From: Pocillopora damicornis
Taxonomy: Eukaryota
NCBI RefSeq assembly: GCF_003704095.1
Contig: NW_020845941.1
Location: 62,001-126,000, forward strand
DNA: 64,000 bases
Direction of reading: 5' to 3'
Shown: piece by piece, positions 2 through 6,983 of the stretch
Numbering within the stretch: position 1 is the first letter of the stretch
How the letters are laid out: each line of letters begins with the position of its first letter
Notes under the pieces: generated by a model
Databases searched by the model: none
Seen by the model: the letters and a program-made list of their open reading frames with translations, nothing else
What the model was told of the DNA's origin: nothing
Translations under genes and position numbers: made by a program

Positions 2-3000
2 GGTGACGCTGAGAACACCAATGAAACATTCAATGTGTTTTGCTCCTGTTGCAAGGTTGACAGATACAAAGAACCAACTATAGCACAGCTCTTTTATGAC
101 CTTGTCAATGTGCAAAATGGTTCTTCATTGCTTACTGAGTTGGAAATGGCTTGTGAGGAATTATTGAAAGTACTAACTCATCTCGGCACTCCAAACACAC
201 TTCAGTTTAATGTTGTTTCACTCCTGCACAATCTGAGCAGGTTAACTGATATCCCTTCTTCACACTTAGAGGCTGTTCAGAGCTACCTGGAAGAAATTGC
301 TAGGGCTTTGTGGCCATACAGCAAACCTCTTGCTCCAAACTTATGGGTTAGTGAAGCATTTTGTGATGCCCAGTGTGACATTCTTAAAGCCTGTGGGAAG
401 TTTCTTGAAGAGAAGTGTCCTGTAAATACAGAACGAACATTCCAGATGATCAGTAACAAGTTAATTTCTGGAGAGATTTCGAAGTACTCTAGGTTTCGGC
501 TACTTGAGATTCAGGAATTACGGTCATCTGGTTGGAAGGTGTCAGAGGCAACAAAGAATTATTACAAGGGAGCATATTTACAGGTACATCTAGATTTTAT
601 TTTAGTCATGTATAACTTGAAGCTGTTGCAGTTGCAGTCAGGCACTTCCAAGCAGGGTGTTCATTAACATTGTTGCATTCCTATTAAAAGATGTTGTGCC
701 ATTGGACTACTAAAGAATATGACTATGATAAGAATGTTTTCGTTTTATTTGCGGCAATATATCTAGTTTATTGGCAGCTTTTGCAAAACAACAACGTAGT
801 TAAGAATATTAAAGGAATGCATCAAACAATTGGCTTTTGCATGAAACAAAGGAAGTTCAGAAATTCTTTATCAGTGCCTCCTTAAAATCAAGGGCATTAA
901 AAGTCAGTAACAGTTGAATGTGTGGTACAGACCTTAATTTTGATCCTTCTCGTAATTGCACCTATTTTTCTAAGGATGGCGTCCTGCCCTATTGCAACAT
1001 AGTGTATTGCCTGCCTGGGACTACGCTTGTTCAGTCAAGATGACTAGATATTAGCATTGTTCTTTTTTTACATTTTAATGTACCTTGACCTCATCTTGGT
1101 CCATGAAGGACTTGACCATCCTCCAGCTGTCTTGCTTGGTCAATAACGTATGCAAATTAAGTGAATGCACACGTGACCATGTCATTCAAACCTTGTTATG
1201 TTTTGCCTGAGTAGTTATTGCATTCTCTGTGCAGTTTTTTGACCAACATCAGAAGGATTTGTCATGCAGAGATACACATGTCCAAACTGAAGCAATTTCC
1301 TCCCGAAATGAATCAAGAATGGTTGATGCTAAGGCAGAGGGTGCTGATCTTAGAAGAATCAAGCCTGTTGCAGTGCTGAGAATTAATGAGTCTGAATTAC
1401 GAAAGTCATTTGGGAACATACAGCAAGAGCTTTCATTAGCTCAGGAAGCAATTCTCAAGGAGAAAGACAAGGAGGCTTATCTCAAATTATATCCTTTTGG
1501 TGATGGTGAGAAATTGGCTACATGTAAACAGCCTGTATCTTTGAATAAACTTGCACCCCATGTTTCTCTCACTAACAATATTCTACAAGAAGCATCCTCT
1601 TCTTTCAACTCAAGTGATGGTAGTGATGATGTTTTTGCAACGGATGACAAAGTGGGCTTTGAGAAGAAAACACGTGAAGTTCATCCTGCCTTACATTGGG
1701 AGGAATTTAGAGAGCCAAGACATTCATTCAAGAGTGATTCCTCACTAACCTCGGATTCTGAATGTTTAGTCACCAGAATGGCATCTTTGTCACTGTCAGA
1801 TACAGAAGAAAACATGATTAATGATGATGTGACCACTATTGGAAAGGTTTCATCAAATTCAATAAACTCTTCTGAGGTCAAGGAGCTGTCTTCTGGGTTA
1901 GTTATTAATACTTGTCCACTCAAATCAATTGCATCAAGTAATGAAGAGCAGCATTTAAACATTGTCCCTAGTGAGAAAAAAATTGGTGATCCAAAGAATA
2001 AAACCACTGAAAGGGATGGAGAAAATTGGGAAGAAAAAACAGTGTTAAGCTCTGAAAAATCCTTGGAAGATGCTAATGACAACAGTCCAGTCACTGAGAA
2101 TTGGAGGGAAAGGAAACCAGCTAAAACAGACAAGTCTCAGGATGATGGTAATGGTCATTACACAGTTGCTGACACCTGGAAAGAGAGAACATTGGTTAAT
2201 TTGAAAGAAGCACAAAACAATAACACCATTAATGCTTATTGTGAAAATTGGAGAGAGAGAAAACTATCTAACATTGGCAAATCAGATGAGGATATCCATG
2301 GCCATCATGTAGTTACAGAAAACTGGAGGGAAGAGCCATTGGTAGATTTAGAAGACCCAGGTAGGAATTGGAGAGAAAGTAAAATGCCAATTCTAAACAA
2401 ATCACCAGAAGTTGTGGGAAATTGGAGGGAAAGTCCACTAGTGGCCTTTAGAGAACCACAGAACAGCTTTATCAATAATTTGTCTGGGATAAACTACAGA
2501 GAACAAAAGCCTGAAAAGTTTATCGACTTTTGGAGCGGTGGTTCTGATCAGAAGAACTGGCGAGATAGAAAATCCATGAGTTTGGATGAGTCCAAACAAG
2601 ATCCTACCTCTACAGCTAGTCAGCAAACAAGGAGACATAGTCTGAGTGATCTACAACTTGAAAGGCAAAACTCTCATGAAAAAGGTTTGTTGGTTCTTAC
2701 ATGTAATTTAAAATAATGAGATGTCACTTATTATACTCATCTGCAGCTTCTGTATGTTGTTTACAGTGATGGACATGGGAATTTCTGGAGCTAGCATCTG
2801 GCAAATATCTTACATATTTACCAATCTTTAATTGCTTGTCAGTGTGGACCATCTTTGTGATTGCATACATGTATTGCACTTATGTGTATATTGTGCTTTA
2901 TTTTTTAGGAAATAAGAGAGGTTTTGGGCTTCCAAAACCAGATGAACAGGTTGACATAGCAGAAAGGTGGGTACACTGTGGTTACACTCTAGTTTACTAA

Positions 3001-6000: not shown

Positions 6001-6983
6001 GGACTTTCTCTTTTCCGGATCAGAAAAAAGTATTATAATAATAATCAGGTGCCCTGGTTAAAGGGCGTTCGTTTGGTGTGATTCCTTCCTACGTGCATGT
6101 CAAGAGCTCATCTGTAAGATCGTTCATCACCCATTCTGCGTGTGAGTTGTTTGGTTTTTTTTTTCCCTTCAAATTCGTTTTCGAATGTTGTACAGTTGAG
6201 GTATACCGATGATCCTGACGTAGCACGCCCCAGCCAAAAGGACAGCAGCGAAGAGAAGCATCAATTGGTAGAGGAACTTTTTGCGACACTAGAGCGAGGA
6301 GAGAACACAACAGGTCAAAGCTATCACACAGAGCAAGCTGGTGTCAGTGCGGAACAGGCTCCAACTAGAGAGGGCTTATCAAGAGAATTTATACTCAGTT
6401 GTGCCCTTTCACCAGTAGCTAGGCAACGCCCTGTTAATATCAGCCTGGACAGGACAGAAGACTGGGTCAGGGAGATCGTCTTGGGCGATGTGAGTAGACA
6501 AAGAATTTTGGAGTATCGAACCTTTGTGTTCTGAAATACTTAGAAATAATTCACGTTAAGTATTACTCAAACCAATGGCAGTAGGTCAAGATGGCCTTTT
6601 TGGGTAACTATGGTTAGCAGTGTGCGTCATTGCAGATTCTTTCAGTTAGTGCTCCATCCCGGCGGATCCACCACTCCTTCCACATTTTCGTATGGCGCAA
6701 CGCTTCCTTAAAACAGAGCAGTGGTTGCTCGGGCGTTGTATTTCAGCAATCAATTGTGCTTCACACTCCGATTGCGAACTTGTCGCCCTTCACTGCTCTG
6801 GCGCTTCCGAGTGTTGTAGAACTACATGCAGCTTTCCCATATTACTCCTTATAATTTCTTTCCTGTCCGTAGGGAAGAAGAGGAGAACGGGACAGCCTTC
6901 ATAAGCAGATACAGAGAAAGGGGTTTGGATCTCCTATGAACACGAACAACCTCCAAGATGGAACTGAAACGAGCACATCTTAA
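2..6983 (+). CDS. Multi-exon gene, 5'-truncated: MIF4G-like + NWRE-repeat + KH-domain protein (Mextli-like putative translation regulator), 968 aa visible
   Basis: Phase-consistent GT-AG exons: <2-583, 1235-2684, 2909-2966, 3367-3425, 3697-3728, 4013-4090, 4582-4632, 4733-4847, 5518-5594, 6196-6489, 6873-6983 (TAA). Exon 1 ends in RFRLLEIQELRSSGWK, like the last MIF4G helix. The spliced small exons give GLKGWQLREIQADTGCKIHANREKCVLTITGHPQQCKVAKKKV, a type I KH pattern with GxxG. AATAAA at 7409. The last two junctions are the least certain. Confidence 0.75.
4110..4320. mobile_element. ~210-bp MITE (TTAA/CCCT termini, piggyBac-like), copy 1
   Basis: Ends AAAGGGTTAA; reverse-complement similarity to the copies at 28679 and 30331. 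Confidence 0.7.
5220..5288. repeat. Tandem duplication of a ~34-bp unit containing a small hairpin
   Basis: GCACAACA(n)TCCCCATTTGAGGGGGAT twice. Confidence 0.85.

Follow-up and report, generated by a model that had tools for sequence, protein, structure and literature searches.

Gene structure and transcripts at the locus

The stretch of DNA analysed in this study (hereafter, the window) comprises 64,000 nucleotides of the Pocillopora damicornis genome (NCBI RefSeq assembly GCF_003704095.1, contig NW_020845941.1, positions 62,001 to 126,000; G000:C2576:62001-126000 of the 234-Mb assembly). At its beginning, positions 2-6983 of the + strand carry a gene that a preliminary description of the same DNA had presented as encoding a translation factor related to Mextli, a scaffold protein that binds eIF4E. 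The exon structure was established by three-frame translation, with splice signals and phases verified for each exon, which yielded 11 exons on the + strand. AG and GT surround each predicted exon, and the phases sum to a single open frame closed by a TAA stop codon (6981-6983). All 11 exons, the first of them in part, lie within the extent that had been assigned to the gene, but the start does not: the initiating ATG is located at G000:C2576:61789, 211 nt upstream of the window. In the 10 kb of upstream DNA examined, an in-frame stop codon precedes this ATG by 17 codons, and an equivalent start methionine is present in the homologues P0001, P0002, P0004, P0007 and P0010. The gene is single-copy in the assembly, and its predicted product has approximately 1039 amino acids (aa).

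The transcripts were evaluated using four polyA/oligo-dT RNA runs, drawn from three studies, whose contigs were mapped on positions 500-6499; the runs containing sequence of the locus were labelled coral or marine metagenome, and the contigs are assemblies, not single molecules. Contig depth tracked the exons. Eight joints were seen exactly as predicted, all with GT..AG ends (2684|2909, 2966|3367, 3425|3697, 3728|4013, 4090|4582, 4632|4733, 4847|5518 and 5594|6196). The joint between exons 1 and 2 appeared in the contigs as 580->1233, where the ends are not GT/AG and a single letter intervenes; since the GT-AG junction 583|1235 would likewise take out 651 nt, the frame is kept. The exon 10/11 joint, beyond the end of the RNA mapping at 6499, is supported only by the transcript-derived orthologue P0163. 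P0163 is a 503-aa Logan protein of another coral, found via exon 2, that extends from the repeats to the C-terminus; exons 3-11 align to it consecutively, with one residue between them where a codon is split. An artefact of the gene model, in which the MIF4G exons and the KH/4E-binding exons would belong to two neighbouring genes, is very improbable, as exons 1 to 10 are joined in single contigs (X2 record 11, 5152 nt; X9 record 15, 6679 nt), X14 record 10 spans mid exon 2 to exon 10, and in a second coral P0163 unites the last part of exon 2 with all exons up to exon 11; X1 provided only partial contigs. The RNA-seq check of the junctions that the preliminary description had called for thus upheld both the in-frame splicing of the exons and their membership in one gene. 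In both X9 and X14, approximately 3.37 kb of contig follow exon 10. If this tail is collinear with the genome, the 3' untranslated region would measure approximately 3.26 kb and end near window position 10,240.

Domain composition of the predicted protein

Exon 1 (window part 1-583; whole exon G000:C2576:61789-62583, 265 codons from the ATG; RNA contigs over 500-580) encodes an N-terminal basic RRN/RRP motif and a domain with predicted helices at aa 41-264. The peptide RFRLLEIQELRSSGWK, quoted in the preliminary description, is located in this exon on the + strand. The AlphaFold2 (AF2) model of the N-domain, built on 15 sequences, was an 11-helix solenoid with a predicted local distance difference test score (pLDDT) of 87.1 and a predicted template modelling score of 0.83. 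When this model was compared with known structures by Foldseek, all four matches at an expectation value (E) of ≤0.001 were SLIP1/MIF4GD (4jhk_A, E 2.6e-5), and the next ranks were occupied by CWC22, eIF4GII, yeast eIF4G, PAIP1, DAP5 and UPF2. The top 12 rows of a VIA-align search against 48,161 chains were all MIF4G domains, with approximately 190-200 residues aligned at a root-mean-square deviation (rmsd) of 5-6 Å and Z scores of 12.7-9.8, a range (below approximately 13) in which, as the program warns, helical repeats may reflect a common arrangement without kinship; the scores included Z 12.7 to yeast eIF4G (2vso_E, 198 aligned, rmsd 5.2) and Z 11.7 to 2i2o_A. At the level of sequence, zebrafish SLIP1/MIF4GD provided the top two of the 17 PDB matches of exon 1 (phmmer, E 0.0021), and a profile of 12 family members matched SLIP1 over 189 positions (profile 76-264, SLIP1 33-219) with E 2.8e-9, while the same profile reached E 0.02-0.07 with the MIF4G domains of eIF4G. 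The ESM Atlas neighbours of the N-domain were MIF4G clusters (score 0.94-0.95), and the Pfam matches on exon 1 were restricted to FAST_1 and DUF7190, both unrelated and sub-threshold. By both model and profile, the N-terminal 265 aa of the coral protein form a complete five-repeat MIF4G solenoid of the SLIP1/MIF4GD subtype, so that the MIF4G domain proposed earlier is borne out by fold and family profile, with the Pfam MIF4G model remaining silent.

The studied gene was rejected as the coral SLIP1 orthologue because a better SLIP1 match exists elsewhere in the assembly. The first exon of a separate SLIP1/MIF4GD-like gene (G000:C1708:469971-470651, - strand; locus L011 172-852) matched zebrafish SLIP1 with E 8.9e-13, compared with 0.0021 for exon 1 of the studied gene, both in single-sequence phmmer searches. 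The match of this SLIP1-like exon to the cnidarian N-domain profile was not significant (probability 3 %, E 0.015). We also rejected the idea that the N-domain keeps the residues with which SLIP1 binds its SLIP1-binding motif: R76, R77, N81 and Q84 align with L, L, E and C, in a poorly aligned, low-confidence stretch. The homodimer interface of SLIP1 is described as formed by helices alpha8-alpha10 (PMC3763545), and the hydrophobic interface positions L196, E200 and Y215 were matched in the alignment of the family profile to SLIP1. As a separate observation, the N-terminus of the C1708 protein, GRGRGRGGFGVPKPGK, resembles RGFGLPKP in exon 3, KGFGSP in exon 11 and RGGFGSPGS in P0007, which may represent a short linear motif shared by the three proteins.

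Exon 2 (1235-2684, + strand; 483 codons and one base; RNA contigs 1233-2682 in four runs) encodes a Ser/Glu/Lys/Asn-rich linker in which no Pfam family was found. It has 26 homologues at E ≤0.001, and the equivalent region of P0163 is predicted to be disordered (residues 1-175 and 187-228, pLDDT <50). The preliminary description had placed a repeat insert of about 480 aa between the MIF4G and KH domains; a 483-aa insert is indeed present, but the repeats are confined to its last 180-200 aa or so. They consist of nine (N/T)(W/Y)(R/K/E)(E/D) motifs, counted by regular expression at 2024-2566 (+ strand), mostly in the form ENWRE(R/S) and spaced by 15-25 aa. Strict NW(R/K)(E/D) motifs occur one to seven times in each of the 26 exon 2 homologues and in P0186, and are absent from the Nematostella protein P0007 and from the two Mextli proteins that were checked. 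SLBP, DBP5 and eIF3g carry a SLIP1-binding motif that starts with Asn-Trp and contains acidic residues; its docking site is the convex face of SLIP1-type MIF4G domains. One might speculate that the coral NW(R/K)E motifs are Trp-centred short linear motifs of a similar kind, and that the coral protein is a multivalent, possibly self-associating hub that shifted from an eIF4E-centred to a MIF4G/SLIP1-centred mode of mRNP assembly after the loss of the canonical Tyr described below; the repeats would then dock on the protein's own MIF4G domain, on that of another copy or on the separate SLIP1-like protein. For SLBP and DBP5, the motif is described as centred on a Trp that has Asn or Ser before it and acidic residues after it (PMC3763545). 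The spacing in the coral repeats is unlike that of the SLIP1-binding motif, however, and a Pro intervenes in many of them, and we regard the hub as a long shot.

The KH domain is distributed over exons 4 to 7 and preceded by a linker encoded by exon 3 (NKRGFGLPKPDEQVDIAE; 2909-2966, 14/18 residues identical to P0163; this and all following exons are on the + strand). Exon 4 (3367-3425, 12/19 identical) contributes strand beta1 (VEVQM; E251-254 in the P0163 model), exon 5 (3697-3728, 10/10) the GXXG loop and the start of helix alpha2, exon 6 (4013-4090, 23/26) the beta2-beta' part (KIHA...VLTITG) and exon 7 (4582-4632, 15/17) the C-terminal helix (VAKKKVYSVIAALQEQF; H292-312 in P0163). The peptides GLKGWQLREIQ, ADTGCKIHANREKCVLTITGHPQQCK and VAKKKV, from which a KH domain had been proposed, are located in exons 5-7 on the + strand. 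The GXXG loop reads G-L-K-G, exons 4 and 5 sharing the codon of the first Gly; its counterpart is GLKG in P0186 and DLKG in P0163. Exon 6 alone (26 aa) matched Pfam KH_1 with E 0.0037 and 17.4 bits, below the cut-off of 21.5 bits, and P0163 matched the same family (PF00013) with 38.4 bits and E 1.1e-9. The AF2 model of P0163 had an overall pLDDT of 52, but values of 84-92 at residues 261-310 and a betaalphaalphabetabetaalpha order at 251-312. The VIA-align rows listed for this model were KH-containing entries covering residues 243-315, with Z 10.1 to MEX-3C KH2 (69 aligned, rmsd 2.6 Å) and Z 9.7 to PCBP1 KH1 (rmsd 1.9 Å). Foldseek gave no matches to the 503-aa model at E ≤0.001, its top rows being KH domains with E ≥0.022, and the ESM Atlas search with the C-terminal half of P0163 returned one KH cluster (score 0.75), which we treat as a lead only. 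Exon 6 and the orthologue thus jointly indicate a type-I KH domain placed after the MIF4G-like domain, as in Mextli.

A second small unit follows the KH domain. Its first half, comprising two predicted helices, is encoded by exon 8 (4733-4847, 35/38 identical to P0163) and its second half, a predicted beta-beta-alpha stretch (TQLFISGRRNCVNHAKAQLAKIKVM), by exon 9 (5518-5594, 25/25). Together they correspond to residues 314-377 of P0163, for which an alphaalphabetabetaalpha order was predicted at a pLDDT of 70-80, with the exon 8 helices at H321-329 and H333-340 and a loop SDG in place of GXXG. MAFFT aligned the beta-beta-alpha half to the conserved Mextli block ...IKITG....V..AKLVL. Pfam found nothing on exon 8, KH_Vigilin at E 0.1 on exon 9 and nothing on the 73-aa stretch of P0163. 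The extra KH-like unit of the preliminary description therefore stands as a predicted order of secondary structure elements, but obtained no significant profile match, and its likeness to KH domains is best treated as a hypothesis.

Exon 10 (6196-6489, 80/96 identical to P0163) encodes an acidic linker with a predicted helix and then a region of the Mextli/4E-BP type (6376-6483), consisting of LSREFILSC at the position of the canonical helix, an elbow ALSP, a linker VARQRP and a second helix TEDWVREIVL; exon 11 (6873-6983, 21/27 identical) supplies the last 36 codons and the TAA. The peptide LSREFILSCALSPVARQRP, which had been described as a 4E-BP-like tail, corresponds to positions 6376-6432 of exon 10. 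Residues 56-82 of this exon aligned to the 4E-binding block (...YSRDFLL.CA.SP.S...P..) of the Mextli profile introduced in the following section (hhalign E 2.3e-5, probability 76 %), the pattern S-R-(D/E)-F-(L/I)-L-x-C-A-x-S-P-x5-P being common to the coral exon and Mextli; when the whole of P0163 was compared with the profile, this block was the only part returned (E 4.2e-4, probability 34 %). In the P0163 model, helices are predicted at H441-449 and H462-469 (pLDDT about 80-89), the second being TEDWV..IVL. Within exon 10, conservation among three corals and Nematostella is highest in a 37-aa block. The search with P0163 residues 221-503 retrieved only P0163 and P0186, and so the conservation of the C-terminal half rests on these three corals and Nematostella. 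The parts of the block follow one another as the canonical helix, the SP elbow and the noncanonical helix do in Mextli and 4E-BP1, and the linker and putative noncanonical motif follow the canonical helix as they do in Mextli.

Relationship to Mextli and possible binding of eIF4E

A HMMER search of 1.84 billion representative proteins gave 17 matches at E ≤0.001. Fifteen of them belonged to an anthozoan-type family or were short fragments, mostly open reading frames (ORFs) of the size of exon 1, and they included the 989-aa Nematostella protein XP_032220297.2 (P0007), annotated as an 'uncharacterized protein'. Most matches carried no taxon name; the only listed ones shown to be non-cnidarian were P0016 and P0017, both of the Mextli type. 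P0016 is a tick protein with the UniRef label MIF4G domain-containing (Haemaphysalis longicornis, KAH9373054.1). We observed in it two tandem half-MIF4G ends and YS(S/R)DFL motifs, but no KH domain, and it looks like a paralogue derived from Mextli by rearrangement. P0017 has a KH_1 match (1.2e-7), a sub-threshold eIF_4EBP match and 401 relatives, the best 120 of which include many proteins designated 'eIF4E-binding protein Mextli' by NCBI (crustaceans, chelicerates and insects), plus Priapulus. A Mextli profile (A2) was built from 22 relatives of P0017 and compared with a cnidarian-type profile (A3) from which P0016, P0017 and P0007 were excluded. The two were matched by hhalign with a probability of 97.8 % and E 1.3e-12; the alignment extends over 77 columns and pairs coral aa 192-265 with Limulus Mextli 110-189. 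A2 also matched Drosophila Mextli (5abu_B, E 2.1e-8), human 4E-BP1 peptides (E 0.0024) and SLIP1 over residues 146-219 only (E 2e-11), from which it follows that the 'MIF4G-like' domain of Mextli corresponds to the last third of a SLIP1-type MIF4G domain. By this alignment, the last ~75 aa of the coral MIF4G domain are the part kept by arthropod and priapulid Mextli. Mextli-type proteins may also dimerise through the shared alpha8-alpha10 part. Mextli has been defined by a MIF4G-like domain, a KH domain and C-terminal canonical and noncanonical motifs, in this order (PMC4573856), and the coral protein has all of these defining sequence features except for the strict canonical consensus. We conclude that the locus is a single-copy, expressed, 11-exon coral gene, probably for a Mextli homologue of approximately 1039 aa, a scaffold with MIF4G, KH and eIF4E-binding-type regions. 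The kinship claimed in the preliminary description is thereby reinforced by the profile comparison and by the Mextli type of both matches shown to be non-cnidarian.

Several results weigh against this conclusion. Pfam MIF4G (PF02854, cut-off 30.8 bits) had no match on exon 1 at E ≤10, and the five matches of a six-frame genome scan with this model were on three other contigs and none at this locus; the same family is carried by none of the 120 best-listed Mextli proteins (of 401 relatives). The caution on helical-repeat Z scores mentioned above applies to the N-domain, whose likeness to Mextli is limited to the 77 columns. Exons 6, 8 and 9 did not match the Mextli profile significantly when tested singly (E 0.2, 0.6 and 0.076), and the hhalign match of the 73-aa second unit of P0163 was misplaced and not significant. 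No KH domain was found by Pfam in Nematostella P0007, so that the architecture is not uniform in Cnidaria. Pfam eIF_4EBP (PF05456) did not match exon 10 (E ≤10) or P0163 (E ≤1), and neither exon 10 nor P0163 had a match at E ≤10 when its sequence was searched against the PDB, and hence none to a Mextli or 4E-BP peptide. Finally, the strict canonical motif YxxxxLPhi is not satisfied, as L-S-R-E-F-I-L (6376-6396) has Leu for Tyr (TTA, 6376-6378) and Ile for Leu. For comparison, Mextli P0017 itself scored 20.5 bits with eIF_4EBP, below the cut-off of 24. Concerning P0007, we noted that its lack of a KH domain could be a real domain loss or the product of an incomplete automated gene model, and that a long SPEHSQP repeat follows its 4E-binding block.

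An alternative is a convergent look-alike, that is, a cnidarian SLIP1/MIF4GD or CTIF paralogue that gained a KH domain and a 4E-BP-like tail independently and is not orthologous to the Mextli of ecdysozoans. In its favour, the N-domain could be aligned to SLIP1 over the whole length and to Mextli over 77 columns only, and the KH and second-unit pieces lacked a significant match to the Mextli profile. A preprint whose species set includes Nematostella, as found by word search, reports that mextli is restricted to ecdysozoans (bioRxiv 10.1101/2024.08.22.609214). However, the N-domain of Mextli is itself SLIP1-like only over the same ~75 residues, and the 77 columns are therefore all there is to align. 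The order of the blocks is also the same (N-terminal basic RP motif, MIF4G C-terminus, KH, second block and 4E-binding block), the coral has its separate and better SLIP1 match at C1708 (E 8.9e-13), and the listed matches of the all-protein search that were shown to be non-cnidarian were of the Mextli type rather than SLIP1 or CTIF. We therefore consider convergence improbable. Word searches found no publication linking Mextli to cnidarians, although the supplementary species lists of PMC4573856 and of the 2024 preprint may name more taxa. PMC4573856 describes Mextli as invertebrate-specific, with families from arthropods and nematodes.

PMC4573856 and PMC8558276 describe the hydroxyl group of the canonical Tyr as bonded to the His-Pro-Leu backbone of eIF4E and this contact as conserved in all structures. 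The Leu codon at 6376-6378 showed no base differences in the four RNA runs covering it, and Leu is also found in P0163 (LSREFIL) and P0186 (LSRDFLL), where the motif YSRDFLL of Nematostella P0007 would be expected. The protein could thus be a Mextli homologue that does not bind eIF4E, its C-terminal block serving another partner after the loss of Tyr, and could act as an eIF4E-independent RNA adaptor through the KH domain, the Trp repeats and the SLIP1-type MIF4G domain (by dimerisation or with SLIP1/CTIF-like partners); the part shared with SLIP1 covers alpha8-alpha10, described as the SLIP1 dimer interface (PMC3763545). YxxxxLPhi was not found elsewhere in the disordered parts of the protein, and the only two instances, FNVVSLL and YSRFRLL, lie inside the folded MIF4G domain. 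Against a loss of binding, three corals and Nematostella show strong conservation of the bipartite block, with its Arg at position 2, F, I/L-L, C, SP, P and TEDW helix, and two insect Mextli proteins also lack the Tyr, the Tyr column of alignment A4 containing Leu in orthopteran P0066 and His in mosquito P0141. CYFIP1, moreover, is described as an eIF4E-binding protein whose motif has Leu at position 1 (PMC8558276). We regard the non-binding adaptor as rather unlikely, yet a good deal more credible than convergence. Binding of eIF4E by the coral protein is plausible but unproven, and we hold it to be slightly better than an even chance; if it is kept, it must lean on the hydrophobic Leu/Ile pair together with the Arg in position 2 and the second helix, which is conserved. 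The 4E-BP-like tail of the preliminary description is accordingly retained as a match to the Mextli 4E-binding block, but with neither the Tyr nor the Leu of the canonical motif.

If the coral protein behaves as a member of the Mextli family, its KH domain would hold mRNA, the C-terminal block would dock on the dorsal and lateral surfaces of eIF4E and the MIF4G domain would recruit initiation partners, by analogy with eIF3 and a DEAD/DEAH-box helicase for Mextli or eIF3g and DBP5 for SLIP1. The whole protein would then form an eIF4G-independent bridge from the cap-binding protein to the 43S machinery. Mextli is among the few known partners of eIF4E, besides eIF4G, that promote translation. It acts in fly germline stem cells and early embryos, and by this purely inferential analogy the coral gene is a candidate regulator of maternal mRNA use in reproduction. 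A cnidarian homologue would place the origin of the family at least at the cnidarian-bilaterian ancestor, which suggests that Mextli dates to the common ancestor of corals and bilaterians. It would also explain the 'MIF4G-like' stub of ecdysozoan Mextli as the C-terminal third, with the SLIP1 dimer-interface part, of a complete SLIP1-type MIF4G domain. The Tyr-less motifs of corals and the KH-less form in Nematostella provide natural variants with which the eIF4E-binding code could be probed. Mextli is known to bind eIF4E and eIF3 and to promote translation in Drosophila and C. elegans only (PMC4573856, PMC13733232).

Other features of the window and comparison with known systems

Repeated elements were observed in three introns of the gene. 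Intron 1 contains an element of approximately 85 bp (1019-1110) that recurs on other contigs of the assembly in at least 22 copies, 72-89 % identical to it. A short interspersed repeat in intron 6 (4100-4300) reached a summed RNA-contig depth of about 8,000-38,000, compared with 5-40 on the exons; its many loose ends and odd joints imply that copies are transcribed from many places in the genome. In intron 8 (5222-5290), a direct duplication of approximately 30 bp, an A-run followed by TCCCCATTTGAGGGGGAT, was recognised by eye. Elsewhere in the window, two long intron-less ORFs with hydrophobic segments (19647-20675, + strand, 343 aa; 34330-35583, - strand, 418 aa) look like rhodopsin-type G-protein-coupled receptors, and a 150-aa open frame at 16034-16483 (- strand) contains a stretch reminiscent of an exon of a P-type (P4) ATPase. 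Runs of N occupy 17436-17535 (100 bases), 22755-22960 (206) and 60170-60269 (100).

Among known systems, eIF4G, DAP5 and PAIP1 resemble the coral protein in combining a MIF4G fold with an eIF4E-binding element, but the likeness is at the level of the fold only (13-18 % identity), and no MA3 domain, W2 domain or PABP-binding part was seen in the coral protein. An alternative eIF4E scaffold, CERES, has also been described in plants (bioRxiv 10.1101/2024.02.20.581179). 4E-BP1/Thor shares the canonical helix, the SP elbow and a Pro-rich linker, and 4E-BP1 peptides are matched by the same Mextli profile as exon 10; the coral protein differs in being large and multidomain, in lacking the Tyr and in having no Pfam eIF_4EBP match. 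SLIP1/MIF4GD (zebrafish 2i2o, 4jhj and 4jhk), together with the MIF4G domain of CTIF, is the best structural and sequence match of the N-domain, but SLIP1 is a single-domain protein of 222 aa. Mextli (Drosophila CG2950 and C. elegans Mxt; arthropod and priapulid orthologues P0017 and P0041-P0159) has the same order of MIF4G-like helices, KH domain, variable linker and bipartite eIF4E-binding region, and shares both the signature RLLE..ELR..GW.......YYK at the end of the N-domain and the block SR(D/E)F(L/I)L.CA.SP.....P. In contrast to the full MIF4G domain of approximately 225 aa in the coral, the Mextli profile offers only about 75 SLIP1-alignable positions and some 40 before them, and the 483-aa insert with its NWRE repeats occupies the place of a short linker, PGE..SGKF.KP.KIPGK, in Mextli. 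Furthermore, the coral protein has Leu in place of the canonical Tyr and measures approximately 1039 aa, compared with a range of about 435 to 1036 aa in the 120 best listed Mextli proteins, most of them 450-730. What sets it apart from the Mextli proteins described so far is the complete MIF4G domain, the repeat insert and the Tyr-less motif.

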